A stretch of 64,000 bases of DNA from NCBI GenBank assembly GCA_965240325.2, contig OZ251247.1:372001-436000 (forward strand), written 5' to 3'. Position numbers and translations under genes: made by a program. Within the stretch, counting starts at the first letter, position 1. The number at the start of each line of letters is the position of its first letter. Positions 1,610 through 61,237 of the stretch are shown here, piece by piece. Under the pieces are notes generated by a model, which saw only the letters and a program-made list of their open reading frames with translations, was not told the origin of the DNA and ran no database searches. This stretch comes from Rebecca billardiae RCC1528 (lineage: Eukaryota; Protista; Haptophyta).

Positions 1610-1810
<201 letters not shown>

Positions 1811-1970
1811 TATTGTCATATCATCGTGATCGATGTCATGTGCTGTCGTGATATATGATACGCGCGGCGACTGCTGCTACTGATGGCATCACGCGCACGA
1901 GCGACGCCGACAACGAACGTCGTCGATGTGATGACGCAAGGCAGCGCGAGGCGTTGGGCGCGGCGCGCTG

Positions 1971-17300: not shown

Positions 17301-17826
17301 TGGCGGCGGCGGCGGTGGTGGCGGTGTCGCTGCTGGCAGCGTCGGCGCTGCTGCCTCTGCTGCCGCCGGCGGCTCTGGCGGCGGCGGTGGCAGCAGCCGC
17401 GGCGGCGGCGGCCACAAGCGCAAGCGCGCGCCGGCGGGCGCCGCGGCCGACGCGCCGCAGCCGCGGCGGCCGCCCGCGCCGCGGCCGCCCCCACAGACGC
17501 CGCCGCCGCTGCCGACGGCGGCCGTGCTGCCGCTGCCGCCGCTCGTGCCCGCCCTCGTCGTCGCCGTGCGCTCGCCCGGCGGCGGCATCACCCGCGTCCT
17601 CGCAGACTCGCCCGGCGGCAGCGGCGCCGACGGCGAAGCCCCGCGCCCGGTGGTGAAGGCGCGGCGCGCGTCGGCGCCCGTGGTGGCGGCGGCGCGCGCG
17701 CTGCTCGCCGCGCACGGCGCGATGGGCTGCGCGGCGGGGGCAGGCGCGGCGCCCTCCGCGCCGAGTGCAGCGGGCGAGGCGACGGCCGCCGTCGTGCGCG
17801 CGGGCCGCGTGGCGACCGCGGCGCCA

Positions 17827-17863
<37 letters not shown>

Positions 17864-17946
17864 GTGCGGGGGGCGCGCCGAGCAGCAGCGCGATGATGGC
17901 GGCGGTGGTGCGCATGCGGCTCTCGGGCCACTCGGCGGGTTGGTAG
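14302..17946 (+). CDS. Large Ala-rich protein with a SANT/Myb domain, a split AP2-like domain and a predicted coiled coil; start and introns uncertain
   Basis: WSVGERARLHALLRTHGRDWPTVAARLGGGRTPRDVSIYFSNYRKARGL (SANT/Myb, about 14635-14785). HAGVRWRR..GWAASVQLGGMVFHL and GVFPTAEMAARACDAF match the two halves of AP2. HKRKR is a possible NLS. Confidence 0.7.
15930..15970 (+). repeat. (CCCTAC)n hexamer run, a telomere-repeat variant; reads PTPTPT in frame
   Basis: aaccctacccctacccctacc... seen directly. Confidence 0.85.
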
Positions 17947-26508: not shown

Positions 26509-28065
26509 ATGAAGGCGCGGCGGCTCGGGCCGACTGCGGCCCCACCCGCCCGGACGACCGGCGCGGCGCGCCCCTCGGCAGCGCGCGCTCGCTGTGCGGA
26601 CGGAGGGCGAGCTTTGCTGCTGGAGGCGCTGCCGCCGGAGGTGGTCGGACACATATTGGCGTTCCTGCCGCCGCGCGACATCGCGCGGGCAAGCCGCGCC
26701 TCGCGCCTCTTCCGCGGCGCGCCGGGCGGCCGCTCGCCGGTCGAGCACGCGTTGCGTGAGCGCGCACGGGCTCGCGGGCACGCGCGCGCGCTGCCGACGA
26801 CGTTGCCGGTGGGCGTGCGCAGCTGGAGGGAGGAGCTCTTTGCGCGTGAGCATGTCTACGAGCTCGCGTGCGTGCACGCATCGCCTGTGGCGGCCGGCGG
26901 CTACTTCAGCGCGTTTGTGGACGCGGAGGGCGGGCTGCACACGTGCGGCGAGCACTTGACGGACCCGAGACTGGGGCACGACCTGTCCAACGCGCCAGTC
27001 GTCTGTGGACACGTCGGCGCGCCGCTGTTGCGGGTGCCGACGCGCATCGCCTCGCTGTCGACGGTGCGCGTGGTCGCGGTGGCCGCTGGCGAGTCCCACC
27101 TGCTCGCGCTGAGCGATGCTGGGACGGTGTACGGCTGCGGCCTTAACTGGAAAGGCGAGCTCGGGCTGGGGGACACGGAGGAGCGGCGTTCGTTCGTTCT
27201 TGTCGCCGAGCCGCACGGCGCACCCCTCGTATGTGTCGCTGCCGGTGCCGCCCACAGCCTCGCGCTCACCGCCGCTGGCTGCGCGTACAGCTGGGGCTTC
27301 AACAACTTCGGCCAGCTCGGCCACGGCGACACGGAGGACCGGTGGGAGCCGACGCGCATCGAGGCGCTGGACGGCGTGCTCGTGGGCGGCGTGGCTGCGG
27401 GTGGTATCCACACGCTGCTTCTCTCTGCGCATGGCGCCGTCTACTCGTGCGGCTCCACCTACTATGGCCAGCTCGGCCACGGCGGCTGTCGGGAGCAGCA
27501 CACGCCGAGGCGCATCAAGGCGCTCACTGGCGTGTGCGCCGTGCACGTGAGCGCGGGTGCTCATCACAGCCTGGTGGTGGGCAGGGAGGGGGCGGTGTAC
27601 TCGTTCGGGAGCGGGTACGGTGGGCAGCTCGGGCTCGGGCGTGACGTTAGGTTCGACGAGCGCACGCCGAGGCGGATTGACGCCCTCGCTGGTGAGCGCA
27701 TCGTGCACGCGTGTGCGGGCCACTCCAGCAGCGCGGTGGTGGACGCGGACGGCGGAGTGCGCACGTTCGGGCAGATCCGCAGAGGCCCCATCGGCCACTC
27801 CACTGGCCATGGCTACGCGGGTATGTACGCGTGCCATAGTCCACGGTGCGTGCATGCCCTCCCCCGGGGGCGCGTGGTGCGCGTCTCCCTGAGCAGCTCG
27901 TCTGCCTTCTTTGTGACGGCTGACGGCTGCGTGTTTGCGTGTGGTTGGCAGACGGCTGCGCTCGGCCTCGGCGTGAGCCGTGCGGACAAGCTCGACGACC
28001 TCACGCGTCCCACGCGCATGGAGCAGCTGCCGCGTGTGGTCGTTTGGGAGGCTGGCTCTGCATGA
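26509..28065 (+). CDS. F-box/RCC1-repeat protein copy 4 (HEHQAH subfamily; the paralogous first ATG reads AGG here)
   Basis: LEALPPEVVGHILAFLPPRDIARASRASRLFR plus RCC1 blades. Paralogs start MHEHQAH whereas this copy has RHEHQAH; the next in-frame ATG is at 26509. Confidence 0.88.
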   Translation: MKARRLGPTAAPPARTTGAARPSAARARCADGGRALLLEALPPEVVGHILAFLPPRDIARASRASRLFRGAPGGRSPVEHALRERARARGHARALPTTLPVGVRSWREELFAREHVYELACVHASPVAAGGYFSAFVDAEGGLHTCGEHLTDPRLGHDLSNAPVVCGHVGAPLLRVPTRIASLSTVRVVAVAAGESHLLALSDAGTVYGCGLNWKGELGLGDTEERRSFVLVAEPHGAPLVCVAAGAAHSLALTAAGCAYSWGFNNFGQLGHGDTEDRWEPTRIEALDGVLVGGVAAGGIHTLLLSAHGAVYSCGSTYYGQLGHGGCREQHTPRRIKALTGVCAVHVSAGAHHSLVVGREGAVYSFGSGYGGQLGLGRDVRFDERTPRRIDALAGERIVHACAGHSSSAVVDADGGVRTFGQIRRGPIGHSTGHGYAGMYACHSPRCVHALPRGRVVRVSLSSSSAFFVTADGCVFACGWQTAALGLGVSRADKLDDLTRPTRMEQLPRVVVWEAGSA

Positions 28066-29332: not shown

Positions 29333-30955
29333 ATGCACGAGCACCAGGCGCACATCCTGCAGCGGATGAAGGCGCGGCGGCTCGGGCCGACTGCGGCCCC
29401 ACCCGCCCCGACGCCCGCCGCGGCGCGCCCCTCGGCCGCGCGCCCCCGCCGCGCGGACGAAGGACGAGCGGTGCAGCTGGAGGCTCTGCCGACCGAGGTG
29501 ATCGGGCAGATACTGGCGTTCCTACCGCCGTTTGACATCGCGCGGGCAAGCCGCACCTCGCGCCTCTTCCGCGGCGCGCCGCCGGACGGCCGCTCGCCGG
29601 TCGAGCACGCGCTGCGCGAGCGCGCGCGCCGGCAGGGCCGGGAGGCCACGCATGAGCCGGAGCCGCTGACTCGGAGTCGCAGCACGCTCGGAGAGCTCAT
29701 CGAGCGTGCACATGTCTGCGAGCTGGCGTGTGCGCACGGGTCCGTGGTGGCATGCAGTCAGCGCACGTACGCTGGCGGACGCTTCAGCGCGTTTGTGGAC
29801 GCGGAGGGCGGGCTGCACACTTGCGGCGAGGAGCCGGTGCGGAACGGGTTGGGGTGGCCGACGGACGATTTTCGAGCACACGCTGCATTGGGCCACCCCG
29901 CTGTGTCGGCTGTGCGCTGGCCGTCGCGCGTCACCTCCCTCAGCGCGGTGCGCGTGCGATCAGTGGCAGCTGGCGAGTCCCACCTGCTCGCGCTGAGCGA
30001 CGGTGGCGCCGTGTACGGCTGCGGCCACAACCGCTGCGGGCAGCTCGGGCTGGGCGACACGGAGGAGCGGCGCTCGTTTGCCCACGTCAACGCCGTGCAT
30101 ACCGGATACGTCGTGAATGTTACTGCCGGCAGCGCCCACAGCCTCGCGCTCAGCGCCGCTGGGTGCGCGTACAGCTGGGGCTTCAACTACTTCGGCCAGC
30201 TCGGCCACGGCGACACGGAGCACCGGTACAAGCCGACGCGCATCGATGCGCTGGACGGCGTGCGCGTGGGCGGCGTGGCCGCATGGTATAGATACACGCT
30301 CTTTCTGACCACGTGCGGCGCCGTCTACTCGTGCGGCAGCGGAAGGGACGGCCAGCTCGGCCACGGCGACCGGCAGGAGCTGCACACGCCGAGGCGCATC
30401 GAGGCGCTCGCGGGCGTGCGCGCCGTGCACGTGAGCGCGGGCCGTGAGCACAGCCTGGTGGTGGACGCGGATGGCGGCCTTCATTCGTTCGGCCGTGCCT
30501 CCGGGGGTGGGCTAGGGCATACCCGCAGCCGCCGTGAGACCAGCCCGAGGCGCGTCGAGACGCTCTCTGATGTGCGCGTGGTGAGCGCCAGCGCGGGCTA
30601 CCACAGCAGCGCGGTGCTGGGTGCGGACGGCAGCGTGCGCACGTTTGGGTTCAACGAGTGCGGCGTGCTCGGCCATCTCAAGCGCTCCAGGCTAGCAGGC
30701 CTGTATGTGCGCCTTCCACGGCGCGTGGCTGCCCTCTCTCGGGAGCGCGTGGTGCGCGTCTCTCTGGGATACTGGTCCGCCTTCTTCGTGACGGCTGACG
30801 GCCGTGTGTATGCGTGCGGCCGGCAGACGGCTGCGCTCGGCCTCGGGCGGGCAACTCGGGAGAGCTTCGGTGTGGATCGTGCGGACGAGCACGACGATCT
30901 CTGCACGCCCACACTCATGGAGCAGCTCCCGCCGCTCGACGCTGCGCGCTGCTAG
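29333..30955 (+). CDS. F-box/RCC1-repeat protein copy 5
   Basis: MHEHQAHILQRMKARRL..., LEALPTEVIGQILAFLPPFDIARASRTSRLFR, RCC1 blades. Confidence 0.92.
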   Translation: MHEHQAHILQRMKARRLGPTAAPPAPTPAAARPSAARPRRADEGRAVQLEALPTEVIGQILAFLPPFDIARASRTSRLFRGAPPDGRSPVEHALRERARRQGREATHEPEPLTRSRSTLGELIERAHVCELACAHGSVVACSQRTYAGGRFSAFVDAEGGLHTCGEEPVRNGLGWPTDDFRAHAALGHPAVSAVRWPSRVTSLSAVRVRSVAAGESHLLALSDGGAVYGCGHNRCGQLGLGDTEERRSFAHVNAVHTGYVVNVTAGSAHSLALSAAGCAYSWGFNYFGQLGHGDTEHRYKPTRIDALDGVRVGGVAAWYRYTLFLTTCGAVYSCGSGRDGQLGHGDRQELHTPRRIEALAGVRAVHVSAGREHSLVVDADGGLHSFGRASGGGLGHTRSRRETSPRRVETLSDVRVVSASAGYHSSAVLGADGSVRTFGFNECGVLGHLKRSRLAGLYVRLPRRVAALSRERVVRVSLGYWSAFFVTADGRVYACGRQTAALGLGRATRESFGVDRADEHDDLCTPTLMEQLPPLDAARC

Positions 30956-33551: not shown

Positions 33552-35150
33552 ATGCACGAGCACCAGGCGCACATCCTGCAGCGGATGAAGGCGCGGCGGC
33601 TCGGGCCGACTGCGGCCCCACCCGCCCCGACGGCCGCCGCGGCGCGCCCCTCGGCCGCGCGCGCTCGCTGCGCGGACAAAGGGCGAGTGGTGCAGCTCGA
33701 GGCGCTGCCATGCGAGGTGATCGGCCAAATACTGGCATTCCTGCCGCCGCTGGACATCGCGCGGGCAAGCCTCGCCTCTCGCCTTTTTTGGGGCGCGCCC
33801 GGCGGGCGCTCGCCGGTCGAGCACGCGCTGCGCGAGCGCGCGCGTCGGCGGGGGCGCGAGGCCGCGCTACAGCCGGTGCTGCGTTCACGGTCTCGCAGCA
33901 CGCTTGGGGAGCTCCTGGAGCGTGCGCATGTCTACGAGCTCGCGCGCGCGCACGCCTCACCCGTCGCGGCCGGCTATCAGTTCAGCGCGTTTGTGGACGC
34001 GGAGGGCGGGCTGCACACGTGCGGCGAGGAGATGGTGTGGGATGAGGACACCGGGCAGTGGACGGGCGAGCGTCGAGCGCACGTGGCTATCGGCCACTCG
34101 GGCGCACCGGCGCTGCTCGTGCCGACGCGCGTGCCCTCGCTCTCTGCGGTGCGCGTCGTCGCGGTGGCGGCTGGCAGCTTCCACCTGCTCGCGCTGAGCG
34201 ATGCTGGGACGGTGTACGCGTGCGGCAAGAACCGCGGCGGCCAGCTCGGGCTGGGCGACACGCAGACGCGGCACAGGCTCGCGCAGGTGCGCCTGACCGC
34301 TGCCGAGCCGGTCGTCTGCATCGCTGCTGGACTGAACGACCACGCGTACAGCCTCGCGCTCACCGCCGCTGGGTGCGCGTACAGCTGGGGCCGCAACAGC
34401 TACGGCCAGCTCGGCCACGGCGACACGGAGCAGCGGCGGGAGCCGACGCGCATCGAGACGCTCGATGGCGTGCGCGTGGGTGGCGTGGCAGCGGGGCCCC
34501 GTCACGCGCTTTTCCTGGCCACGCGTGGCTCCGTGTACTCTTGCGGCGATGGCGATTGCGGCCAGCTCGGCCACGGCGACCGGCAGGTTCAGCACACGCC
34601 GAGGCGCATCGAGGCGCTAGCGGGCGTGCGCATCGTGCGCGTGAGCGCGGGCGAGATGCACAGCCTGGTGGTGGACGCGGCGGGCGGCGTGCACGGGTTT
34701 GGGAATGGGATGTGGGGTAGGCTGGGCCTTGCCCCCACCCGCTCGGAAGACCGCCCGACGCGCGTTGGCACGCTCTCCGGTGTGCGCGTAGTGAGCGCCA
34801 GTTGTGGGCTCCTCTGGAGCACGGTGGTGGGTGCGGACGGCAGCGTGCGCACGTTTGGGTTCAACGGCAACGCCGTGCTCGGTCATCCCGCCGGCCCTAA
34901 GGGCTTGGTTGAGATCGTGCGTCGTCCACGGCGCGTGGCTGCCCTCTCCAGGGAGTGTGTGGTGCACGTTTCTCTGGGTAACGCGGCAGCCTTCTTCGTG
35001 ACGGCTGACGGCTCTGTGTTTGTGTGCGGAGTGGTGACGGCTGCGCTCGGCCTGGGCGTGGGATGTGCGGACGACCTCGGCGTGCTCGACATGCCCGCAC
35101 GCATCGAGCAGCTCCCGCCGCTCGGCGTTGCGCACTTCTGGTCGGAGTGA
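33552..35150 (+). CDS. F-box/RCC1-repeat protein copy 6
   Basis: MHEHQAH start, LEALPCEVIGQILAFLPPLDIARASLASRLF, RCC1 blades. Confidence 0.92.
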   Translation: MHEHQAHILQRMKARRLGPTAAPPAPTAAAARPSAARARCADKGRVVQLEALPCEVIGQILAFLPPLDIARASLASRLFWGAPGGRSPVEHALRERARRRGREAALQPVLRSRSRSTLGELLERAHVYELARAHASPVAAGYQFSAFVDAEGGLHTCGEEMVWDEDTGQWTGERRAHVAIGHSGAPALLVPTRVPSLSAVRVVAVAAGSFHLLALSDAGTVYACGKNRGGQLGLGDTQTRHRLAQVRLTAAEPVVCIAAGLNDHAYSLALTAAGCAYSWGRNSYGQLGHGDTEQRREPTRIETLDGVRVGGVAAGPRHALFLATRGSVYSCGDGDCGQLGHGDRQVQHTPRRIEALAGVRIVRVSAGEMHSLVVDAAGGVHGFGNGMWGRLGLAPTRSEDRPTRVGTLSGVRVVSASCGLLWSTVVGADGSVRTFGFNGNAVLGHPAGPKGLVEIVRRPRRVAALSRECVVHVSLGNAAAFFVTADGSVFVCGVVTAALGLGVGCADDLGVLDMPARIEQLPPLGVAHFWSE

Positions 35151-41380: not shown

Positions 41381-42874
41381 ATGGCGCCATCGGCGAAGCA
41401 TGGCGAGGCGCACCCTGGGGCGCTGCGGCTGGCCGACCTGCCGTCCGAGCTGATCTCGCGCCTGCTGCTCCACCTCGACAACGCGCGTGACCTCGCTGCC
41501 GCCAACGCCACGGGGCGCCTCTTCCGCGGCGAGCCTGGCGAGCGCTCGCCGGTCGAGCACGCGCTGCGCGACCGCGCTCGTGCTCGCGGGCACGCGCGCG
41601 TCCTGCCGACCGAGCTGCAGGCGGCCGTGTGCAGCTGGAGAGAGGAGCTCTTTGCTCGCGAGCTCGTGCTCGAGCTCGCGAAAGCGCACCGGAACATCGT
41701 GGACGTTGGCTCTTCCGCTGTGGGTCGGTTTGGTGTGCCCAAGGAACACTCTTACTTCTTCAGCGCGTTTGTTGACGCGGAGGGCGGGCTGCACACGTGT
41801 GGTGAGGAGGAGGCGCGGGACGAGCACGGCCGGCTGCCCGACGAGTTCCGTGCGCACGCCGCCATCGGCCACGGCGTCACCAGTGCGCTGCGCGTGCCGA
41901 CGCGCGTCGCCTCGCTCAGCGCAGTGCGCGTGCGCTCCGTGGCCGCTGGCTGCCACCATCTGCTCGCGCTGAGCGAGGCGGGCACCGTGTACGGCTGCGG
42001 CTACAACGGGTACGGCCAGCTTGGGCTGGGTGACGATAAGAGGCGGCGATCGTTCGCACTGGTGAATGCGTTGCGGCATGAAGCCGCCGTGTGCATCGCA
42101 GCTGGCGTCATCCACAGTCTCGCGCTCACCGCCGCTGGCTGCGCGTACAGCTGGGGTGACAACCGCAGCGGCCAGCTCGGCCACGGCGACAAGAAGGACC
42201 GGTGGGAGCCGACGCGCATCGAGGCGCTGGATGGCGTGCGCACCGGTGGCGTGGCATCAGGCGGCGCCCACACGCTGCTGCTCTCGCTCGACGGCGCCGT
42301 CTTCTCGTGCGGCTGGGGCCGCGTTGGCGTGCTCGGCCACGGCGACGAGCAGGATCAGCACACGCCGAGGCGCATCGAGGCGCTCGCGGGCGTGCGCGCC
42401 GTGCACGCGAGCGCGGGCAGTGGGCACAGTCTAGTGGTGGACGCGACGGGCGGCGTGCACTCGTTTGGGGCGGGCAACACGGGCACGTGGGACGCCCATT
42501 GGCTCTCCCAGCTCACACCTAGGTGCATCGGCGTGCACGCCGTGCGCGCCAGCTGCGGCTTGTGCTGCAGCGCGGTGCTTGGCGCGGGTGGCAGCGTGTA
42601 CACATTCGGGGACAACCGATGTGGCCAGCTGGGGACTGCCGCCCACACGCTGTTGGCCACTCCTTGGCAGGTCGCCCTCGCCAATACGCGCGTGCTCCAG
42701 TGCGCGCTCTGCGAGACCCACGCGCTGTTTGTGACGGCGGACGGCGCTGTGTATGCGTGTGGCATGCAGTCGGCCGCGCTCGGCCTGGGCATGCGGCGCG
42801 AGCCACTCACGACACAGCCAGTGCCGCTCCAGCGCGTGACGCAGCTGCCGCCCCTTGCAGGCACGCTCCCCTGA
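41381..42874 (+). CDS. F-box/RCC1-repeat protein copy 9
   Basis: LADLPSELISRLLLHLDNARDLAAANATGRLFR, RCC1 blades. Confidence 0.92.
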   Translation: MAPSAKHGEAHPGALRLADLPSELISRLLLHLDNARDLAAANATGRLFRGEPGERSPVEHALRDRARARGHARVLPTELQAAVCSWREELFARELVLELAKAHRNIVDVGSSAVGRFGVPKEHSYFFSAFVDAEGGLHTCGEEEARDEHGRLPDEFRAHAAIGHGVTSALRVPTRVASLSAVRVRSVAAGCHHLLALSEAGTVYGCGYNGYGQLGLGDDKRRRSFALVNALRHEAAVCIAAGVIHSLALTAAGCAYSWGDNRSGQLGHGDKKDRWEPTRIEALDGVRTGGVASGGAHTLLLSLDGAVFSCGWGRVGVLGHGDEQDQHTPRRIEALAGVRAVHASAGSGHSLVVDATGGVHSFGAGNTGTWDAHWLSQLTPRCIGVHAVRASCGLCCSAVLGAGGSVYTFGDNRCGQLGTAAHTLLATPWQVALANTRVLQCALCETHALFVTADGAVYACGMQSAALGLGMRREPLTTQPVPLQRVTQLPPLAGTLP

Positions 42875-43229: not shown

Positions 43230-45148
43230 GCACTCGCGCACGGCGCAGCGCGATATCATCCGCGCCATGCACGGGTGACGATGATGGCTCCGGTCGGGGC
43301 GGTCCTGTCACTGGGTCCAGTCACGTCAGGTGTATCGTAGCGATCGTACTACTAGGGACGGAAGGCGCCCTGCTGCCGCTGGTCCAACTACTGTACAGCA
43401 CCGCTCCGCCACCGAGTCCGGAGCGAACCGCCGGACGAGTGACGACCAAGCCGCGACGCTGCTATGCGACCAACCGCCATCCAATATTCGCCGCATCCCG
43501 CTCGGCCGAGAGAGAGATCGATGGCATCCGCGGCGACGACGCACGGGCGTGGCGGGGCGCACTCGGGAGCGCTGATGCTGACCAACCTGCCGCCCGAGCT
43601 GATCTCGCGCCTGATGATCCACCTCGACAGCGCGCGTGACCTCGCCGCCGCCAACGCCGCCTCGCGCCTCTTCCGTGGCGCGCCCGGCGAGCGCTCGCCG
43701 GTCGAGCACGCGCTTCGCGAGCGCGCGCACGCTCGCGGCCACGCTGACGCGCTGCCCACCGAGCTGCCGGCGGGCGTGCGCACGTGGTCCGAAGAGCTGT
43801 TTGCGCGCGAGCGACTGCTCGAGGTCGCGCACGCGCACCGGAACGTCGTGACCGCCGGCGCATTCTTCGACGTCGCTAGCTTCAGCGCGTTTGTGGACGC
43901 GGAGGGCGGGCTGCACACGTGCGGCGAGGAGGAGGCAGAGGACGAGGACGGGTGGCCACTGCGCTGCGCGCACGCCGCTATCGGGCATGGCGTGGACGCA
44001 GGCACACGGTCTGTGCTCGTGCCGTCGCGTGTCACCTCGCTCAGCGCGGTGCGCATGTGCTCCGTGGCTGCAGGCGAGTCCCACCTGCTCGCGCTGAGTG
44101 ATGTTGGGACTGTGTACGGCTGCGGCCACAACCGCTGCGGGCAGCTCGGGCTAGGCGACACGCAGGAGCGGCGCTCGTTTGCCCTCGTCGACGCCTTGCA
44201 GGCCGAAGACGTCGTGGGTGTTACTGCAGGCGGCACCCACAGCCTCGCGCTCACCGCCGCTGGGTGTGTGTACAGCTGGGGCTGGAACCACTACGGCCAG
44301 CTCGGCCACGGCGACACGGAGGACCGGTGGGAGCCCACGCGCATCGAGGCGCTGGACGGCGTGCGCGTCGGTGCCTTGGCCGCGGGGTCTTGGCACACGC
44401 TGCTCCTGACGACGCACGGCGCCGTCTACTCGTGCGGCAGCGGACGGCACGGCCAGCTCGGCCACGGCGACCAGCTGGACCAGCGCACGCCGAGGCACAT
44501 TGAGGCTCACGCTGGCGTGCGCGGCGTGCACGTGAGCGCGGGCCGTGAGCACAGCCTGATGGTGGACGCGGACGGCGGCCTTCATTCGTTTGGCCGTGCC
44601 TCAGGGGGTGGGCTAGGGCATACCAGCAGCCGCCCTGAGACCAGCCCGAGGCGCGTCGAGACGCTCTCTGGTGTGTGTGCAGTGCGCGCCAGCGCTGGCT
44701 CCCACAGTAGCGCGGTGCTGGGCGCGGACGGCAGCGTGCACACGTTTGGGTTCAACGCTCTGGGCGTGCTCGGTCATCCCACGAGCTCTACGCCAGCTTG
44801 CCCGCATGAGCTCCTTCCACGGTGCGTGGCTGCCCTGTCTCGGGAGCGCGTGGTGTGCGTCTCTCTGGGCCTACGGTCAGCCTTCTTCGTGACGGCTGAT
44901 GGCCGTGTGTACTACTCGTCAAATCCTGCAATTCGCCGCGAGCACCGCGCGGCCGGAATGCGCTCGCTGAAGCGCGCGCGTCAGAGGCGGGGAGCCTCCG
45001 TCGCCCCGAAGGCGCGTGCGACGCGGGCGCGAGCGCGCGCGCGCGGGCGCGCGCGCGGGCGAGTGATCTGGCTGACGCCCGGCCGCCCACCCGCGCCCCA
45101 CCACCCCCGCGCCCCGCAACCGCAGCGGCGTCAGCCAGATCTGCCCCG

Positions 45149-47714
45149 ATGCGGCGCACGCGAGCACAGCCGGGCTCTCCATCGGCATCTCGCTCTGCGA
45201 CGCCCAAGAAGAGGGAGCGTGATGCGAAGACGCGCAACGCGCGCCGAGAGCAGGCCAAGCTGGACTCGGCGAAGAAAAGGGGCCCCGTGCCAGAGAAGCG
45301 GCAGCGCCGAGACTCGCTCCCCCGAAACGCGCACGCCGAGGAGGCGTACGCCGGCGAGGCGCTGGCAGCTGACATGATGCTCAAGCTCGCGGGCGCGAAG
45401 AAGCAGGCGGAGAAGAAGAAGAAGCAGAAGGTGGAGGTGGCGGCGCGGGGGGACGACGACGACGAGGAGGAGGAGGAGGAGGAGGCGGCGGCGGCGGAGG
45501 CGGAGGCGGATGCGGCCGGCGACGACGAGGAGGAGGACGATGACGAGGAGGAGGAGGAGGCGGAGGCGGAGGCGGAGGCGGAGGCGGAGGGGGAGGGGGA
45601 GCAGGAGGAGGAGGAGGAGGAGGAGGAGGAGGAGGAGGAGGAGGAGGAGGAGGAGGAGGAAGAGGAGGAGGACGGCGCCGAGGAGTCCGACGAGGACTCG
45701 CAGGACAAGCACGACGTCAGGCGGTACGGCGGCCGCAACATCGACGGCGTCGAGAAGACCGACGGCACGAGGATCAGGTTGGAGATGACTGCGCCGAAGG
45801 ACATGCCCTCCTTGGGCGGCAAGGAGATAGTGACGGCGTACATCGGCTACCGCTCAGGCCGATTCTTCGACCCCAACGCGCGGCAGGTGACCGTCGCGTT
45901 CCGCAACCGAAGCCTCTACTGGGGACGGCCCAACGCGCGCACGGTGAGGGCGCTCCTCACACTGGTCGGACAGGTGTGTGAGGCGAAGGTCGGGGCCATG
46001 AGCGAGGCGCGGCCGCACCACAGCGCCAAGCTCTACGCGCTGCCGGCGCCGACTAAGAACGGGCGCGGGCCGAACCTGAAGGCAATGCTCCGCGAGCTCG
46101 ACACGGAGACGACCTTCCAGTTGTACGTCCAGGCGTCGGGGTCGATCGAGGTCGTGGTAGGGCCGACAGTTGCCATGTACGCCGAGGAGAAGGCGGAAGC
46201 TGAGGTGCAGCTGGCGACGGCGGCGAGTAAGCGCGAGCATGAGGCCGCGATGCGTGCGAGTGATGCGAAGCGCGCCGAGCTGCTGCGCGAACGCGCCAAG
46301 CTCAGGAACGCCAAGCTGCAGAAGCAGGTCGACGGTGTCGTCGTCGGCGGCGGCGGCGGCGCGCGTGGCAGCGGTGGCGGCCGCAGCGGCGGCCTGGACG
46401 ACGGCTGCGACGAGGAGGACCTCGGCACGCCCATCGGGGGGCGGCAGTACGCGATTTACCTGTATCCGATGCATGCGACGTCGGGCGGGGTGCGGCTGCA
46501 ATTCCTCCGCATCGACGGCGAGCAGCTCGCCAGCCTCAGCGACGCCGAGCACGCGGTGCGCACTGCACAGCCCTCCGGGCATCTGTTCGGGCCGCTGCCC
46601 GGCACGCCGCTGGAGCTCTCTCTGCTGCATGTGGCCTCGGGCGGCAAGATCGTGGCCGCCGGCCCGCACGAGATCTTGACGAGGGGCTCTGACCTGTCGA
46701 AGCAGTACACGCGCAACCCGCGCGAGAGCGGGCTCCACGTGCTCCACCTCGGGCTCCAGCCGGCACCTGCGCCCGCAGCACCTGCGCCGTCGGCTGTTGC
46801 CGGTGGAAAGAATCGGCGGGCGGCGGCGGGCGGCCTGACGCTAGCGCAGCGGCTCGCCGCGCAGACGGTCGACAACGCGCCGGATGCGCCACGCGCGAGC
46901 CTCGGTGGGCGCAGCACCGATTACCGCCCGACGTACGACCCGCACGGCAACGGGTCTCCGCCGACGCCGCTCGGTTCGTCCCCCGCGGAGCAGCTCAACG
47001 ATATGCAGAACATGAACGACCTGAGGAGCATGGTCGGCACCTGGTTCGGCAGCAAGTGGAAGCACGACTCGGCGCTCGAGAGTTTTGCTGTCAAGGAGCT
47101 GATCAACTCCGGCCTGCATTACGACATCCTCGCCCGCCCGGAACACGCGGGCCAGCGGCTCGACCAGGTCCGCTTCGAATGGCCGCCACACAACCGCCCG
47201 CGCGACAAGAACGTACACGGTGTGTGCGCGGCGCGCGGCGCGCGCGCGCGCCAGAGACCACGCGCCCTCCTCTCACACGCTACATCTACGCACGCGTGCG
47301 AACCCCTGCCCCGCAGCGTCACACGCGGCAGCGCCGCCGACCCAGTACCCGCCGGCGGCGCAGGCATTCGCAGCGCTCGGCGCTGGCGCGATGGCGCCGA
47401 GGGCGCCTTACCCACAGCCTGGCGGGGCGCCCGCCGTGCCGCCTCACCTCTCCTTCAGCGAGCGGTCCGCGCGCTTTGCGCGCGCCATCGCGGAGCTGAA
47501 AATGAATGCCGACTTTGACACCGAGATGAAGATGTACCTCGCGCAAGCAGCTGCTACGGAGAACAGCATGCCTACCCTGAGCGATCCGCAGGCGCGCTCT
47601 CTATTCGCGCACAGCGTCGGCCCCTCCTCCTCACCTGTCGCGGTCGGCTCGCAGTACAACGACTACCGTGGACGTGGTGACGACGACGATTTCACGGGCG
47701 GCAGCAACCCCTGA
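45149..47714 (+). CDS. Transposon accessory protein of unknown function (about 820 aa; basic N-terminus, poly-Glu tract); probable intron 47220-47316
   Basis: Long GC3-biased ORF starting at an ATG inside the left TIR. A g|GTGTGT...CCGCAG| splice puts the 47317-47714 block (MNADFDTEMKMYLAQ...GSNP*) in frame. Confidence 0.75.
45465..45672 (+). repeat. (GAG)n / (GAGGCG)n coding repeat giving poly-Glu and EA tracts
   Basis: Seen directly. Confidence 0.95.
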
Positions 47715-47744
47715 TCGCCATCGTCAGTCGATGATGCTGCTGAC

Positions 47745-47930
47745 AACATTATAAACAGTGACGGCGATTTCAGCTGCTACATCCGGGCGTCATTGAAAAT
47801 CGGTCAATAAATACGCGTATTATTATAATAATATTGTTAAATAATATATTGTAATATGTATCATCGTCCGATATTATTATAAAATATATATTTAACCGTG
47901 CGCTGTGACTTAGCCATATAGTTTGAGTAA
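47745..47930. terminator. AT-rich region between the convergent transposon genes; probable bidirectional 3'-end/polyadenylation region
   Basis: Sharp AT enrichment with AATAAA near 47807, between the stops at 47714 (+) and 48008 (-). Confidence 0.5.
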
Positions 47931-48007
47931 GTGACGGTCGAGTCCGCTGACGGATCGCAGACGGCAGAGTCCGAGATTACATACGACGAATATCGTGGCG
48001 CCTACGA

Positions 48008-49069
48008 CTACACACTGTAGCCACAACGCGCAAAGTTGCGTGCCGCGCTGGCCGCCGGGTGGTCGCTCGTGAAGCAGCACGCAAAGGCAAGCGCCAGTGC
48101 TTCTGTCAGCTCCATCGAGTTGAGCGTGCGGCCGTGGCGACGCCAGTACGCCTTAAACGTGTTGAAGGCGAACTCGATCGGCGAGTCGATCGGCGAGTAC
48201 GGTGCCAGGTAGAGGATGCGCCCGCCCTTCATCGCCACGGCACGACGCAGCAGCTTCTCCTCTGCGTGGTGAGTGCGGCAGTTGTCCAGGACAAGGATCG
48301 ACCGCGGCTGCGGCCACGGCTGCATGTTGTCGTCAATCATGTCGATGATCGCCTCCATGAAGCGCTCTGTGTTGAAGGCGCCCTGGGCCCATCGGAAGTC
48401 GACGAAGCCCGTGACGTCGTACAACGCCAACACCGAGATCATCTTGCCCCGGTGCCAGATCTCAGTCACCGTCACGCGCGAGCCGACAGCACCCCATCCA
48501 CGCTTGCGCCGCATCGTGCGACTGTCCATGGCCGTCTCGTCGCCGAAAAGCAGTTGAGCCCGCGTGATCACGTTCTCTGCGATCGCTGCCCAGTACAGCA
48601 TCCGGTTGAACTCGTCCCGCTGCTGCGCCTTCCTCTGCATCTTCTTCAACGAGATGTGGGCAGCGAGAAGGGCCCCGTGGACGTACTGCCTGGAGTAGAT
48701 CACCCGGGTACGACGCCACAGCTCGTCGCACATCTCGTCCAGGAAGAGCCATGGGTGCTCCGCGACGATGGCGAGCAGCGTCTTCTGGTGCTCCGGCGGC
48801 ATCTTCTTCCGGGCTGGCTTGCGGGGGGCGAAGTCCACCAGGCCGGTATCGTTGTAGCGCTTGATCGTCTTCTGTACAGTGCGCCTGGACACGCCCGTGC
48901 GGAAGGTGGCAACGAGCTCAGCGATTGTGGCTGTGCCGATATTGTGCACGAAGAACATGACCACGATCGCCTGCAACAGGTCGACCCCGAGCCGCCCCCC
49001 AGCGCGGCCGCGCGGCCGCCCACGCGCACGGCCCGGGCCGACTGAACGTGCGCCTCCAACGTGCCGCAT
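48008..49069 (-). CDS. IS630/Tc1-like DDE transposase (DD36E), 353 aa
   Basis: HTH region (VSRRTVQKTIKRY, HPWLFLDEMCDEL). Catalytic motifs LLFGDET, SILVLDNCRTHH and LYLAPYSPIDSPIEFAF, with 36 residues between the second D and the E. The ATG lies inside the right TIR. Confidence 0.93.
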   Translation of the reverse strand: MRHVGGARSVGPGRARGRPRGRAGGRLGVDLLQAIVVMFFVHNIGTATIAELVATFRTGVSRRTVQKTIKRYNDTGLVDFAPRKPARKKMPPEHQKTLLAIVAEHPWLFLDEMCDELWRRTRVIYSRQYVHGALLAAHISLKKMQRKAQQRDEFNRMLYWAAIAENVITRAQLLFGDETAMDSRTMRRKRGWGAVGSRVTVTEIWHRGKMISVLALYDVTGFVDFRWAQGAFNTERFMEAIIDMIDDNMQPWPQPRSILVLDNCRTHHAEEKLLRRAVAMKGGRILYLAPYSPIDSPIEFAFNTFKAYWRRHGRTLNSMELTEALALAFACCFTSDHPAASAARNFARCGYSV

Positions 49070-50144
49070 CGGGGCAGATCTGGCTGACGCCGCTGCGGTT
49101 GCGGGGCGCGGGGGTGGTGGGGCGCGGGTGGGCGGCCGGGCGTCAGCCAGATCACTCGCCCGCGCGCGCGCCCGCGCGCGCGCGCTCGCGCCCGCGTCGC
49201 ACGCGCCTTCGGGGCGACGGAGGCTCCCCGCCTCTGACGCGCGCGCTTCAGCGAGCGCATTCCGGCCGCGCGGTGCTCGCGGCGAATTGCAGGATTTGAC
49301 GAGTAGTATGCGTGCGGCCAGCAGACGGCTGCGCTCGGCCTTGGGCGGGTGAGCTTCGACGCTGATGACGAGGATAGTGCGGACGAGCATGACGAAGTCA
49401 CCACGCCCACACTCATGGAGCAGCTCCCGTCACTCTACGCTGCGCGCTGCTGACGGGCGGGTTGGGAGTGCTGCTGCCTGTGGGCGGCAGTGGCGTGGCC
49501 CGCAGCCTTATTCGTGCCAGCATACGCCATGCTCCAGGCCACGACGACTCACGACTGTCATCATGGATCATCCGTAGTGGTGCGACCTTGAACAGAACTT
49601 TGACTGCGCGTGAGGCGGAATGACGCACGCGCGGGATGATGACGATCCGAGCTAGCACTGCTCCTGCGGTCCAAGGGCTTTGTCCGCCCGAATTAAGTAA
49701 TTGTTTAAATAAGCTGATGTGTTCATCACAGATCACTGTTCACCAGAAAACTTTTATTTATACGTACAGTTGTGTGACGTTGAATTCGGATGCTTAAATG
49801 TTTCGGACGCGGAAAGGCTCGGGCGCTGAAAGCGCCCGAGCCCACCCTTGAGGTCCGGAGGCGCACACCGTACCCGCTTGCCGTGCTTGATTTGAAAGTT
49901 TCACGGCGACCCCGCGTTCTCCCGCATATACAATCGCATCAAACATGAGACGGCTTAGAATAGTGAGTAGGCATCTCCCACAATCTCGCGGGAATCTAGA
50001 ACGGCGCGGGGGTATCTCAGCGTACTGCAAGGTATCTTCGTACGCTGAAACATTCATGCGCTCAAATGGTCAGCCATGTGTTTCGGCGACGACGAATCGC
50101 GCGCCGCGATTTAGGCTAGAATTCCCTAATGCACTTCAGACTAC

Positions 50145-50254
50145 CGAATGTGCTTTCTGATTGGTTGGAGGGTAGCATCGCCCGCCCGAATCTTGCAGTC
50201 GAATGTGCTTTCTGATTGGTTGGAGGGTAGCCTCGCCCGCCCGAATCTTGTAGT
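50145..50254. repeat. 55-bp tandem repeat x2 containing ATTGG (reverse CCAAT)
   Basis: cgaatgtgctttctgattggttggagggtagc.tcgcccgcccgaatcttg twice. Confidence 0.85.
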
Positions 50255-52345: not shown

Positions 52346-53858
52346 ATGGCATCCGCGGCGACGACGCACGGGCGTGGCGGGGCGCACTCGGGAGCGCTGA
52401 TGCTGCCCGACCTGCCGCCCGAGCTGATCGCGCGGCTGCTGCTTTGTTTCGACAGCGCGCGTGACCTCGCCGCCGCCAACGCCGCCTCGCGCCTCTTCCG
52501 CGGCGCGCCCGGCGAGCGCTCGCCGGTCGAGCACGCGCTGCGCGAGCGCGCGCGCGCTCGCGGCCACGCTGACGCGCTGCCCACTGAGCTGCCGGCGGGC
52601 GTGCGCACATGGCTGGAGGCGCTGCTAGCGCGTGAGCGACTGGTCGAGATCGCGCACGCGCACCGGAACGTCGTCGCCGCCGGCGCATTCCTCGACGTCG
52701 CTTGCTTCAGCGCGTTTGTGGACGCGGAGGGCGGGCTGCACACGTGCAGCGAGGAGGAGGAGGTGCTGGATGATCGCTTCCAGTGGACGGGCGAGTATCG
52801 GCTGCACGCGTCCATCGGCCACCCAGATGCGCCGAACGTGTGCTTGCCGACGCGCGTCGCCTCGCTCAGCGCAGTGCGCGTGCGCTCCGTGGCCGCTGGG
52901 CGGGACCACCTGCTCGCGCTGAGCGCCGCCGGCACCGTGTACGGCTGCGGCATCAACGAGTACGGTCAGCTGGGGCTGGGGGACGCCGACGAGCGGCGGT
53001 CGTTTTGCGGAGGTAGACGTGCGTTCAGGTGGGTTGGTCGGGGCTATCGCCGCGGCCGCTTGCCACAGCATCGCGCTCACCGCCGCTGGGTGTGTGTACA
53101 GCTGGGGCCGCAACGAGTGCGGCCGGCTCGGCCACGGCGACACGAAGGAGCGGCGGGAGCCGACGCGCATCGAGGCGCTGGACGGCGTGCTCGTGGGTGG
53201 CGCGTCCGCGGGCGAGGCGCACACGCTGCTGCTCTCGGTGCAGGGCGCCGTCTACTCGTGCGGTTGGGGCTACAAGGGCCGTCACGGCCACGGCAACAAG
53301 AAAAGTCGGCGCACGCCGAGGCGCATCGAGGCGCTCGCGGGCGTGCGCGCCGTGCACGTGAGCGCGGGCAGGCTGCACAGCCTGGTGGTGGACGCGGCGG
53401 GTGGTGTGCACTCTTTTGGATGTGGGGACGGGGGCTGCCTGGGCCACGGGGACGAGGCCAAGCAAACACTGCCCAAGCGTATAGAGGCGTTGGCGGGTGT
53501 GCACGCCGTGCGCGCGTGCGCTGGCTCAGGCGGCAGCGCAGTGGTCGGCGCTGACGGCAGCGTGCACACGTTCGGGGACAACGAGCAAGGGCAGCTGGGG
53601 CTCGGCGCCGAGCGTGAGCACGCGCGGCTGCCCGCGCGCGTTGACACCCTCTCTCCCCAGCCCGCGCTCGGCTGCTCGCTCTGCGGCACCCACGCGCTGT
53701 TCTTGACGGTGGAAGGCGCTGTGTACGCATGTGGCATGCAGTCGGCAGCACTCGGCCTCGGGCTGGCGATCAACGCCAACGAGGAGGGTGGGCGCTCTGC
53801 GCAGCCGGCGCCGCAGCGCGTGACGCAGCTGCCGCCCCTTGCGGGCACGCTTCCCTGA
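52346..53858 (+). pseudogene. F-box/RCC1-repeat gene copy 12 with a +1 frameshift (possibly a sequencing error)
   Basis: TTTT at 53003-53006; deleting one T gives RRSFAEVDVRSGGLVGAIAAAACHS and fuses ORFs 52220..53554 and 53019..53858. Confidence 0.85.
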
Positions 53859-54063: not shown

Positions 54064-55563
54064 ATGGCATCCGCGGCGACGACGCACGAGCGCGACGAGG
54101 CGCACGTGGGAGCGCGGCTGCTGACCGACCTGCCGTCCGAGCTGGTCTCGTGCCTGTTGGCCCACCTCGGCTGTACGCGTGACCTCGCCGCCGCCAACGC
54201 CGCCTCGCGCCTCTTCCGCGGCGCGCCCGGCGGGCGCTCGCCGGTCGAGCACGCGCTGCGCGAGCGCGCGCGCGCGCGGGGGCGTGCGTGCGCGCTGCCC
54301 ACCGAGCTGCCGGCGGGCGTGCGCTCATGGCTGGAGGAGCTGTTTGCGCGTGAGCGACTGGTCGAGCTCGCGCACGCGCACCGGAACGTCGTCGCCGCCG
54401 GCGCAGCCCTCGACGTCGCTAGCTTCAGCGCGTTTGTGGACGCGGAGGGCGGGCTGCACACGTGCGGCGAGGAGGAGGTGGTGGACGAGGTCTGGGGGGA
54501 GCTGCCGGGCGAGTATCGACCGTCCATGGCGATCGACCACCCAGATGCGCTGAGCGTGTGCTTGCCGACGCGCGTGGCCTCGCTGAGCGCGGTGCGCGTG
54601 TGCTCCGTGGCCGCTGGCTGCGCCCACCTGCTCGCGCTGAGCGATGCCGGCGACGTGTTCGGCTGCGGCAAGAACCACCGCGGACAGCTTGGGCTGGGCA
54701 ACGCGGAGAGGCGGTGGTCGTTTGCCCTGGTCGGCGCATTGCGAGGTCAGCTCGTCGTGATCGCGGCTCGCGGGCACCACAGCCTCGCGCTCAGCGCCGC
54801 TGGCTGTGCGTACAGCTGGGGCAGCAACGGCTGCGGCCAGCTCGGCCACGGCGACACGGAGAAGCGGTGGGAGCCGACGCGCATCGAGGCGCTGGACGGC
54901 GTGCGCGTGGGCGGCGTTGCTGCAGGTGGTGCTCACACGCTGTTCCTATCTGCGCATGGCGCCGTCTTCTCGTCCGGCGACGGCTACTTTGGCCAGCTCG
55001 GCCACGGCGACCGGCGGAATCAGCACACGCCGAGGCGCATCGAGGCGCTCGCGGGCGTGCGTGCCGTGCACGTGAGCGCGGGCACGGAGCACAGCCTGGT
55101 GGTGGACAGCGACGGGGTGGTGTACTCGTTTGGACGTGGGGACGGGGGCTGCCTGGGCCATGGGGACAAGGTCACACAACATCTGCCCAAGCGCATCGAT
55201 GCATTCGCGGGCGTGCACGCCGTGCGCGCCTGTGGCGGGCTATGCAGCAGCGCGGTGGTCGGCGCTGACGGCAGTATGCACACGTTCGGGAGCAACGAGC
55301 ACGGGCAGCTGGGGCTCGGCGCCGAGCGTGGGTGTGCGCTGCTGCCAGCGCGCGGCGACACCCTCATGCACCCGCCCGTGCTCGGCGTCTCGCTCGGCGA
55401 CACCCACGCCCTATTCGTGACAGCTGGCGGCGCTGTGTACGCATGCGGCATGCTGTCGGCAGCACTCGGCCTGGGCATGCGGCGCGAGCCACGCATCAGG
55501 ACACGGCCCGTGCCGGTCCAGCGAGTGACGCAGCTGCCGCCCCTTTCGCGCATGCTTCCCTGA
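54064..55563 (+). CDS. F-box/RCC1-repeat protein copy 13
   Basis: LTDLPSELVSCLLAHLGCTRDLAAANAASRLFR, RCC1 blades. Confidence 0.92.
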   Translation: MASAATTHERDEAHVGARLLTDLPSELVSCLLAHLGCTRDLAAANAASRLFRGAPGGRSPVEHALRERARARGRACALPTELPAGVRSWLEELFARERLVELAHAHRNVVAAGAALDVASFSAFVDAEGGLHTCGEEEVVDEVWGELPGEYRPSMAIDHPDALSVCLPTRVASLSAVRVCSVAAGCAHLLALSDAGDVFGCGKNHRGQLGLGNAERRWSFALVGALRGQLVVIAARGHHSLALSAAGCAYSWGSNGCGQLGHGDTEKRWEPTRIEALDGVRVGGVAAGGAHTLFLSAHGAVFSSGDGYFGQLGHGDRRNQHTPRRIEALAGVRAVHVSAGTEHSLVVDSDGVVYSFGRGDGGCLGHGDKVTQHLPKRIDAFAGVHAVRACGGLCSSAVVGADGSMHTFGSNEHGQLGLGAERGCALLPARGDTLMHPPVLGVSLGDTHALFVTAGGAVYACGMLSAALGLGMRREPRIRTRPVPVQRVTQLPPLSRMLP

Positions 55564-59707: not shown

Positions 59708-61237
59708 ATGGCATCCGCGGCGACGACGCACGGGCGTGGCGGGGCGCACTCGGGAGCGCTGATGCTGACCGGCCTGCCGCCCGAGCTGATCTCGCGCCTG
59801 ATGATCCACCTCGACAGCGCGCGTGGCCTCGCCGCCGCCAACGCCGCCTCGCGCCTCTTCCGTGGCGCGCCCGGCGAGCGCTCGCCGGTCGAGCACGCGC
59901 TTCGCGAGCGCGCGCACGCTCGCGGCCACGCTGACGCGCTGCCCACCGAGCTGCCGGCAGGCGTGCGCACGTGGTCCGAAGAGCTGTTTGCGTGCGAGCG
60001 ACTGCTCGAGGTCGCGCACGCGCACCGGAACGTCGTGACCGCCGGCGGATTCCTCGACGTCGCTAGCTTCAGCGCGTTTGTGGACGCGGATGGCGGGCTG
60101 CACACGTGCGGCGAGGAGGCGCTGCGGGACGAGGACTGGGGGGAGCCGACGGGCGAGTATCGACCGTCCGTGGCGATCGACCACCCAGATGCGCTGAACG
60201 TGTGCTTGCCGACGCGCGTGGCCTCGCTCAGCGCGGTGCGCGTGTGCTCTGTGACCGCTGGCTTTGCCCACCTGCTCGCGCTGAGCGACGCCGGCACCGT
60301 GTACGGCTGCGGCGGCAACCTGCACGGCCAGCTCGGGCTGGGGGACGATGAGACGCGGCGCTCGTTCGTCGAGGTCTACCCGCTCGCGCGCGAGCTCGTC
60401 GTCTCGATCGCCGCGGGCGGCGACCACAGCAGCGCGCTCACCGCCGCTGGGTGTGTGTACAGCTGGGGCAACAACGGGCACGGCCAGCTCGGCCACGGCG
60501 ACACGGAGAAGCGGTGGGAGCCGACGCGCATCGAGGCGCTGGACGGCGTGCGCGTGGGCGGCGTTGCTGCAGGTGGTGCTCACACGCTGTTCCTATCTGC
60601 GCATTGCGCCGTCTACTCGTGCGGCGACTGCTACAACGGCCAGCTCGGCCACGGCGACCGGCGCAATCAGCACACGCCGAGGCGCATCGAGGCGCTCGCG
60701 GGCGTGCGCGCCGTGCACGTGAGCGCGGGCAATCAGCACAGCCTGGTGGTGGACGCGGAGGGTGGTGTGCATTCGTTCGGACGTGGGGACTGGGTCTGCC
60801 TGGGCCACGGGGACGAGACCACGCAACCACTGCCCAAGTGCATCGATGCATTGGCGGGTGTGCACGCCGTGCGCGCCTGTGGCGGGCTATGCAGCAGCGC
60901 GGTGGTCGGCGCGGACGGCAGCGTGCACACGTTCGGGGAAAACGAGCACGGCCAGCTGGGGCTTCGCGCCGAGCGCGAGTACGCGCTGCTGCCCGCGCGC
61001 GTCGACACCCTCTCTCCCCAGCCCGCGCTCGGCTGCGCGCTCGGCTCCACCCACGCGCTGTTCTTGACGGCGGAAGGCGCTGTGTACGCATGTGGCATGC
61101 AGTCGGCAGCACTCGGCCTCGGGCTGACGATCAACGCCAACGAGGAGGGTGGGCGCTCTGCGCAGCCGGCGCCGCAGCGCGTGACGCAGCTGCCGTCCCT
61201 CACTGGCACGCTCCACGACCGTGTGTGGCGTTCGTAG
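59708..61237 (+). CDS. F-box/RCC1-repeat protein copy 14
   Basis: LTGLPPELISRLMIHLDSARGLAAANAASRLFR, RCC1 blades. Confidence 0.92.
   Translation: MASAATTHGRGGAHSGALMLTGLPPELISRLMIHLDSARGLAAANAASRLFRGAPGERSPVEHALRERAHARGHADALPTELPAGVRTWSEELFACERLLEVAHAHRNVVTAGGFLDVASFSAFVDADGGLHTCGEEALRDEDWGEPTGEYRPSVAIDHPDALNVCLPTRVASLSAVRVCSVTAGFAHLLALSDAGTVYGCGGNLHGQLGLGDDETRRSFVEVYPLARELVVSIAAGGDHSSALTAAGCVYSWGNNGHGQLGHGDTEKRWEPTRIEALDGVRVGGVAAGGAHTLFLSAHCAVYSCGDCYNGQLGHGDRRNQHTPRRIEALAGVRAVHVSAGNQHSLVVDAEGGVHSFGRGDWVCLGHGDETTQPLPKCIDALAGVHAVRACGGLCSSAVVGADGSVHTFGENEHGQLGLRAEREYALLPARVDTLSPQPALGCALGSTHALFLTAEGAVYACGMQSAALGLGLTINANEEGGRSAQPAPQRVTQLPSLTGTLHDRVWRS

Follow-up and report, generated by a model that had tools for sequence, protein, structure and literature searches.

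We analysed a 64,000-nucleotide stretch of the genome of the haptophyte Rebecca billardiae RCC1528 (contig OZ251247.1, positions 372,001 to 436,000; hereafter the window, in whose coordinates all positions are given), in which a gene for an RCC1-repeat protein is split by a DNA transposon. The element spans 44912–49306 and is 4,395 bp long, as delimited by a repeat search of the window. Between its terminal inverted repeats (TIRs) lie a transposase gene on the minus strand and a second gene on the plus strand, which face each other across a short spacer (Table 1). The only start codon within the element that is in frame with each gene is one and the same ATG, located in the last 7 nt of the TIR and therefore present at both ends.

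Table 1. Features of the transposon and of the host gene that it interrupts.
Feature	Position	Strand	Basis and remarks
Left TA target-site duplication	44910–44911		Read at element end; paralog empty site has a single TA
Left TIR, 244 bp	44912–45155	+	Repeat search, identity re-checked; contains upstream ATG 44958, (GCGC)n tract and shared ATG 45149
Perfect 15-bp inverted repeat inside TIR	45065–45141 (arms 45065–45079 and 45127–45141)	+	Ends 7 nt before the ATG; mirror copy at 49077–49153
Predicted second gene, exon 1	45149–47219	+	Open reading frame from first ATG; coding-type codon-position GC
Predicted spliceosomal intron, 97 nt	47220–47316	+	GT..AG, pyrimidine-rich 3′ end; joins two reading frames
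Predicted second gene, exon 2 with stop codon	47317–47714	+	Frame of the open reading frame ending at 47714; coding-type codon-position GC
Spacer between convergent genes, 293 bp	47715–48007		AT-rich core 47800–47899; imperfect palindrome 47823–47882
Transposase gene	48008–49069	-	353 aa, intronless; helix-turn-helix and DDE_3 catalytic domain; D177, D262, E299 (DD36E)
Right TIR, 244 bp	49063–49306	-	Identical to left; mirror ATG 49069–49067
Right TA target-site duplication	49307–49308		Read at element end; paralog empty site
Interrupted host gene (RCC1-repeat protein), upstream part	43464–44911	+	Pfam RCC1 3.8e-61, RLD 4.8e-64
Interrupted host gene, downstream part	49309–49453	+	In frame up to the stop; paralog match across joined flanks

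The ends of the element are defined by the single outstanding inverted repeat of the window. Its arms (44910–45155 and 49063–49308) are 246 nt long and 100% complementary, and each of them consists of a 244-bp TIR together with the outermost TA, which is itself palindromic. A perfect inverted repeat of 244 bp is impossible by chance. On both sides the inner terminus of the TIR reads ...CCCCG ATG CGGC, and identity between left and right ends 4 nt past the ATG. Perfect TIRs and a helix-turn-helix (HTH) region at residues 57–131 of the transposase were thus found together, as expected for the IS630-Tc1-mariner (ITm) superfamily; so was the target-site duplication (TSD) of that superfamily, with a TA on both sides of the element and a single TA in the empty site of a paralogous gene. 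A search for RNA families within the element found none.

The minus-strand product is an intact transposase of the IS630/Tc1 type. In Pfam it matches DDE_3 (1.7e-18, profile positions 1–140 of 146) and HTH_32 (5.7e-10), the latter in the HTH region just mentioned, where HTH_29 and HTH_23 match as well. Against the NCBIfam IS630 equivalog model (NF033545) it scores 123.9 bits, with a cut-off of 100, over model positions 21–295 of 299. The catalytic residues lie within the motifs FGDET, LVLDNC and PIE, are spaced D-84-D-36-E and are invariant in an alignment of 13 sequences (this protein and 12 homologs). The spacing of 36 is not constant in the lineage, as an insertion lengthens the stretch from the second D to the E in several homologs. 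The alignment profile matched no solved Tc1/mariner transposase in a search of solved structures. Protein database searches returned 22 relatives at 35–54% identity; metagenome and sequencing-run assemblies supplied nearly all of them, and the haptophyte Pavlovales sp. CCMP2436 contributed one, a partial protein. No close relative was found in a pattern scan of 185,579 prokaryotic genomes, and a scan of viral contigs yielded no related locus.

The insertion site could be read to the nucleotide. On the left, the element adjoins the end of a 482-codon open reading frame (ORF) with RCC1 repeats, and the right flank carries on in the same frame (ACGQQTAALGLG...); RCC1 paralogs in the window read ...GAVYACGM.SAALGLG... 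across the insertion point. When the two flanks are joined via one TA, they form an unbroken match to the paralog at 30719–30897, with 85% identity over 179 nt. This paralog thus carries the exact empty site (30769–30850), where the junction GTGTG-TA-TGCGTGC contains a single TA; therefore, the element inserted at the TA of a Tyr codon and duplicated it. The insertion point is this Tyr codon in the last RCC1 blade, in a coding exon, and the TA is duplicated as in other ITm elements. Since the TIRs are identical, both element genes intact and the host ORF otherwise undamaged, the data indicate a recent insertion. An assembly fold-back artefact was considered and ruled out, on the grounds that the interior is found only once and that the flanks, put together, line up exactly with paralog sequence.

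The host gene belongs to a dense tandem family of F-box-like/RCC1 genes, one member of which has been knocked out by the transposon. The last RCC1 blade recurs in at least a dozen paralogous copies across the window between 7246 and 61124, for example at 27844–27971, 30719–30897, 34929–35058, 42728–42789, 53700–53769, 55374–55475 and 61061–61124.

On the plus strand, a 789-codon ORF (45149–47518) opens at ATG 45149, its first start codon. The original prediction had taken this ORF, overlooking an intron, as the accessory gene; its start and its coding character hold, while its end has to be revised. The final ~100 codons appear to be out of frame, and a predicted 97-nt intron (47220–47316) shifts reading into the frame of the ORF at 47220–47714 (frame arithmetic was done by hand), which moves the end of the gene to 47714. 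The predicted two-exon product has ~822 aa, and its exons were searched separately. GC content at codon positions 1, 2 and 3 (GC1/2/3) is 0.73/0.48/0.88 in exon 1 and 0.67/0.59/0.78 in exon 2, to be compared with 0.61/0.47/0.85 in the transposase and 0.73–0.76/0.55–0.57/0.82–0.86 in host genes; the antisense frames of the second gene lack this coding-type pattern. Because its codon-position GC resembles that of the transposase and host genes and that of the antisense frames does not, we take the plus-strand ORF to be a real coding gene with one predicted intron.

In the competing view, the GC-rich DNA has merely left a frame open where there is no gene, and the transposon has a single gene, its other, long half being non-coding. 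This view draws on the lack of any homolog or domain, on a poor structure model and on the many overlapping ORFs that cover both strands of the region. It hardly seems credible to us. Only this frame combines a GC3 of 0.88 with a GC2 of 0.48, a pattern shared by the transposase and host genes; by our own estimate, an open frame of 789 codons would arise by chance at the local base composition with a probability of ~6e-7; and a clean GT..AG intron links the ORF to a second frame that has the same coding signal.

From N- to C-terminus, the predicted second protein contains a basic head resembling a nuclear localization signal, an acidic tract of ~85 codons, a long predicted helix taken to be a coiled coil, and Gly-rich and Pro-rich stretches. 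It matches no Pfam, NCBIfam or PHROG family. With low confidence, we would guess at a nuclear, chromatin-associated helper or an anti-silencing factor. The acidic tract is encoded by ~70 GAG-like triplets (45464–45672; 83% matches, TRF), a microsatellite-like coding repeat whose length is likely variable.

The TIR itself contains only two ATGs, one at position 47 (44958 in the left copy) and the shared ATG at position 238. Between them lie a GC-rich (GCGC)n tract (45012–45061 in the left TIR) and the 15-bp inverted repeat, which might serve as a binding palindrome for a protein, belong to the promoter or act as a leader hairpin that dampens translation. A repeat search in the TIR did not find the terminal sequence repeated, and hence there is no inverted repeat-direct repeat (IR-DR) layout. 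At the other end of both genes, the core of the spacer has a GC content of 20%, in a window of ~70% GC, and the imperfect palindrome located there is AT-rich; we infer that the spacer is a shared 3′-end and termination region for both genes. This architecture agrees with the original prediction on most points. It had described an IS630/Tc1-type element, now borne out by the Pfam and NCBIfam matches and by the TA TSD, and identical 244-bp TIRs ending in CCCCG-ATG-CGGC; it had also placed the start of the accessory ORF at the left ATG, found the mirror ATG (49069, minus strand) in frame with a DD36E transposase, and let the two genes converge on an AT-rich spacer, all of which was recovered here.

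Whether the shared ATG is the real start can be judged best for the transposase. Ahead of the first conserved helix its homologs have 20–30 residues, including a conserved basic motif of the RGR type, and the next Met in the transposase frame falls within that helix (~residue 44). These N-termini agree with 49069, rather than the next Met, as the start, and the TIR-borne ATG is thus well supported as the probable start codon of the transposase. The position of this ATG at the edge of both TIRs might still be coincidental, the true starts being downstream Met codons (~residue 44 in the transposase frame and ~residue 76 in the second frame) or lying in a spliced-in upstream exon. Frames do stay open by chance in DNA of 70% GC, and reading the TIR by hand reveals no stop in this frame over its full length; moreover, with a hairpin and an upstream ATG in the TIR, the shared ATG would be poorly placed to serve as the first AUG. 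We nevertheless regard a coincidence as improbable, given that the conserved N-terminal motif and first helix begin upstream of the next Met and that TIR identity stops 4 nt past the ATG on both sides. By our rough estimate, the probability is ~0.004 that the final 7 nt of the repeat would by chance hold an ATG from which long ORFs run in frame on either side.

We next considered the copy number of the element in the genome, where all counts are lower bounds. This locus alone was recovered from the 72-Mb assembly of 41 contigs, whether the query was the TIR or its outer 79 nt, the transposase, either exon of the second gene or Pfam DDE_3. The search with the TIR is the one that the original prediction had proposed for finding full-length copies. 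No further copies, miniature inverted-repeat transposable elements or solo TIRs of this element were detected in the assembly, the remaining matches being (GC)n-like simple sequence. The proposal of a recently active family is therefore upheld as regards recent insertion, with identical TIRs, intact genes and an otherwise undamaged host exon, and finds no support as regards a family. The single-copy state would suit an element that arrived recently, possibly through horizontal transfer; codon-position GC equal to that of the host argues for a donor of similar composition.

A metagenome scan yielded one related locus that was read, L033 (contig Ga0164294_10050177, 3,243 bp), whose transposase is 42% identical to the one described here. 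It contains a convergent ORF of 433 aa (1739–3040, minus strand), for which neither the R. billardiae genome nor the protein database held a relative. The transposase of L033 does not read through in one frame: an intron or a frameshift interrupts it between 669 and 787. This layout is compatible with exchangeable cargo or a mere neighbouring gene, and it neither confirms nor refutes a conserved partner.

We favour, with a probability of about 0.6, the reading that this is an intact cut-and-paste element of the IS630/Tc1 branch, autonomous and present in a single copy, in which the second gene and the transposase are each started by a TIR-borne ATG and the inner part of the TIR is a putative mirrored expression module. 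The outer part of the TIR would be the end bound by transposase, while the inner part would supply promoter, leader and start codon, all facing inwards. As part of the inverted repeat, this module occurs at both ends; one copy would drive the transposase and the mirror copy the second gene. The upstream ATG at position 47 and the strong hairpin restrict where transcripts may start: a transcript with the shared ATG as its first AUG would have to start within TIR positions 48–237. The transcripts of both genes would end in the AT-rich spacer, and TIR-bound transposase could regulate the two genes together. Symmetrical putative promoters that co-express both genes are plausible.

Several observations weigh against this reading. 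No homolog of the second protein turned up when 5.8 billion clustered proteins were searched by words and 1.84 billion representatives with phmmer; it has no look-alike in the ESM Atlas and no confident fold either, a single-sequence AlphaFold model reaching a predicted local distance difference test score (pLDDT) of 40 with only one long helix modelled. The ATG at TIR position 47 lies in another frame, and transcripts starting further out would include it and the overlapping ORFs, of 139 and 186 codons, that it opens. The hairpin formed by the inverted repeat inside the TIR (-48.1 kcal/mol, z = -2.07 versus shuffles) lies 7 nt before the shared ATG and would impede scanning if it were part of the leader. 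The convergent ORF of L033 is unrelated to the second gene, with BLASTP E-values of at least 1.7 and Smith-Waterman scores within those of shuffles, and no TIRs are visible on the 3,243-bp contig. A hand-picked collinear stretch of the two proteins was equalled by 14 of 500 shuffles and is not counted as evidence. The term ‘partner’, which the original prediction had applied to the accessory protein, is thus left without support, both by the missing homologs and by the unrelated ORF of L033.

The same observations bear on the possibility that the second gene is a passenger of an ordinary one-gene IS630/Tc1 element. Such a gene would have no role in transposition and would have been fused by chance to the mirror leader and ATG, for example when one end was rebuilt by copying the other TIR. 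An orphan gene with a predicted spliceosomal intron and a slippage-prone (GAG)n tract would suit a passenger, as would the different convergent ORF of the 42%-identical relative, and typical Tc1/IS630 elements, including Luffy of haptophytes, have a single ORF (PMC10138859, PMC6875036). On the other hand, neither a donor gene nor a paralog is present in the 72-Mb host genome, the ORF starts exactly at the TIR ATG and is intact over ~820 codons, and its codon-position GC matches that of the transposase. We assign a passenger gene a clear minority of the weight, enough for it to be taken seriously.

A wider reading would extend the expression module to a whole lineage. An IS630/Tc1-like lineage of haptophyte-type algae may have made its long TIR into a mirrored expression cassette, such that any coding sequence at the inner edge of the second TIR would be co-expressed with the transposase; the element would then be a natural two-sided expression and capture device. 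Such a device would explain why the convergent genes of this element and of L033 are unrelated and fast-evolving. We consider this extension rather unlikely.

Two further features were noted around the element. Just downstream of the interrupted gene, a tandem repeat of two 55-bp units, 96% identical, lies at 50145–50254, with a weaker third relative at 49677–49702. GC content varies widely along the window, from 35% in the kilobase at 1001–2000 to 85–87% over the two kilobases at 16001–18000.

If both starts are truly in the TIR, the element would represent a compact way for a Tc1/IS630 element to express two genes from one regulatory sequence, and the expression of both would also be tied to transposase binding at the element ends. 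Outside ciliates, members of the ITm superfamily are regarded as one-gene elements. The basic and acidic regions of the orphan second protein look nuclear, and the protein could be a transposition helper or anti-silencing factor of a new kind; that it is cargo is just as possible. Few genetic tools are available for this group of algae, and an element that is intact, present once and newly inserted in a coding exon offers a candidate for an active transposon there; it may also be a recent horizontal arrival.

In the part of the literature that we covered, no IS630/Tc1 element is described in which the start codon for two convergent genes lies in the TIR. With bacterial IS630 the element shares the TA target and a transposase that scores above the NCBIfam equivalog cut-off. 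IS630 itself is a prokaryotic insertion sequence of ~1.1–1.2 kb with short TIRs, whereas the element described here resides in a eukaryote, measures 4,395 bp, has 244-bp TIRs and contains a predicted spliceosomal intron. Incomer (DD36E/IC), a Tc1/mariner group restricted to animals, is ~1.2 kb long, with a single ORF, TIRs of 22–32 bp and a transposase of ~346 aa (PMC6875036). The two are alike in the D-36-E spacing (D262 to E299 here, in a lineage whose own homologs vary in this spacing), in the TA TSD and in transposase size, and they differ in total length, ORF number and TIR length. Luffy, a Tc1-Mariner element of the haptophyte Tisochrysis lutea, is 2,567 bp long, has 14-bp termini and ~20 copies, and encodes a single 463-aa ORF without a Pfam match (PMC10138859). 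Both are mobile, TA-duplicating elements of haptophytes, but Luffy is a one-ORF element with 14-bp termini.

Long TIRs with promoter activity are known from one-gene elements of the superfamily. In Bari3, promoter activity resides in a 256-bp TIR region (PMC4120734), and Sleeping Beauty shows inward, convergent transcription from both inverted repeats (PMC3343047). Both elements have one gene and an IR-DR layout, in contrast to the two genes found here and to TIRs in which the terminal sequence is not repeated internally. The ATG of Bari3 lies 99 bp beyond the TIR and its mirror promoter serves no gene, while here the ATG is inside the TIR.

Elements with several genes are also on record. That Tc1/mariner elements have one gene, as the original prediction had it, is true of typical members; three-ORF ITm elements with long TIRs are known in ciliates. 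Tec1 and Tec2 of Euplotes and TBE of Oxytricha have three ORFs, one of them on the opposite strand, and Tec TIRs measure ~700 bp (PMC7325037, PMC4724952). They resemble our element in superfamily and in having several ORFs, and Tec also in its long TIRs. Unlike it, they encode a DD34E transposase, are confined to ciliate germlines and occur in thousands of copies, compared with DD36E and a single copy here. The second protein described above matches none of the domains of their additional proteins, namely the tyrosine recombinase of Tec and the 22-kD and 57-kD zinc-finger/kinase proteins of TBE.

The closest parallel in layout comes from an unrelated superfamily. MuDR of maize, a Mutator element, has two convergent genes, for a transposase and a protein of unknown function, between TIRs of ~215 bp (PMC3440606). 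The arrangement of two convergent genes between long TIRs is thus alike, whereas Mutator elements have a transposase of the Mutator-like element (MULE; MURA-type) class and a 9-bp TSD, as opposed to DDE_3/IS630 and a TA TSD here. Both promoters of MuDR are reportedly located in its TIRs, with the start codons said to lie inside the element, beyond the TIRs.

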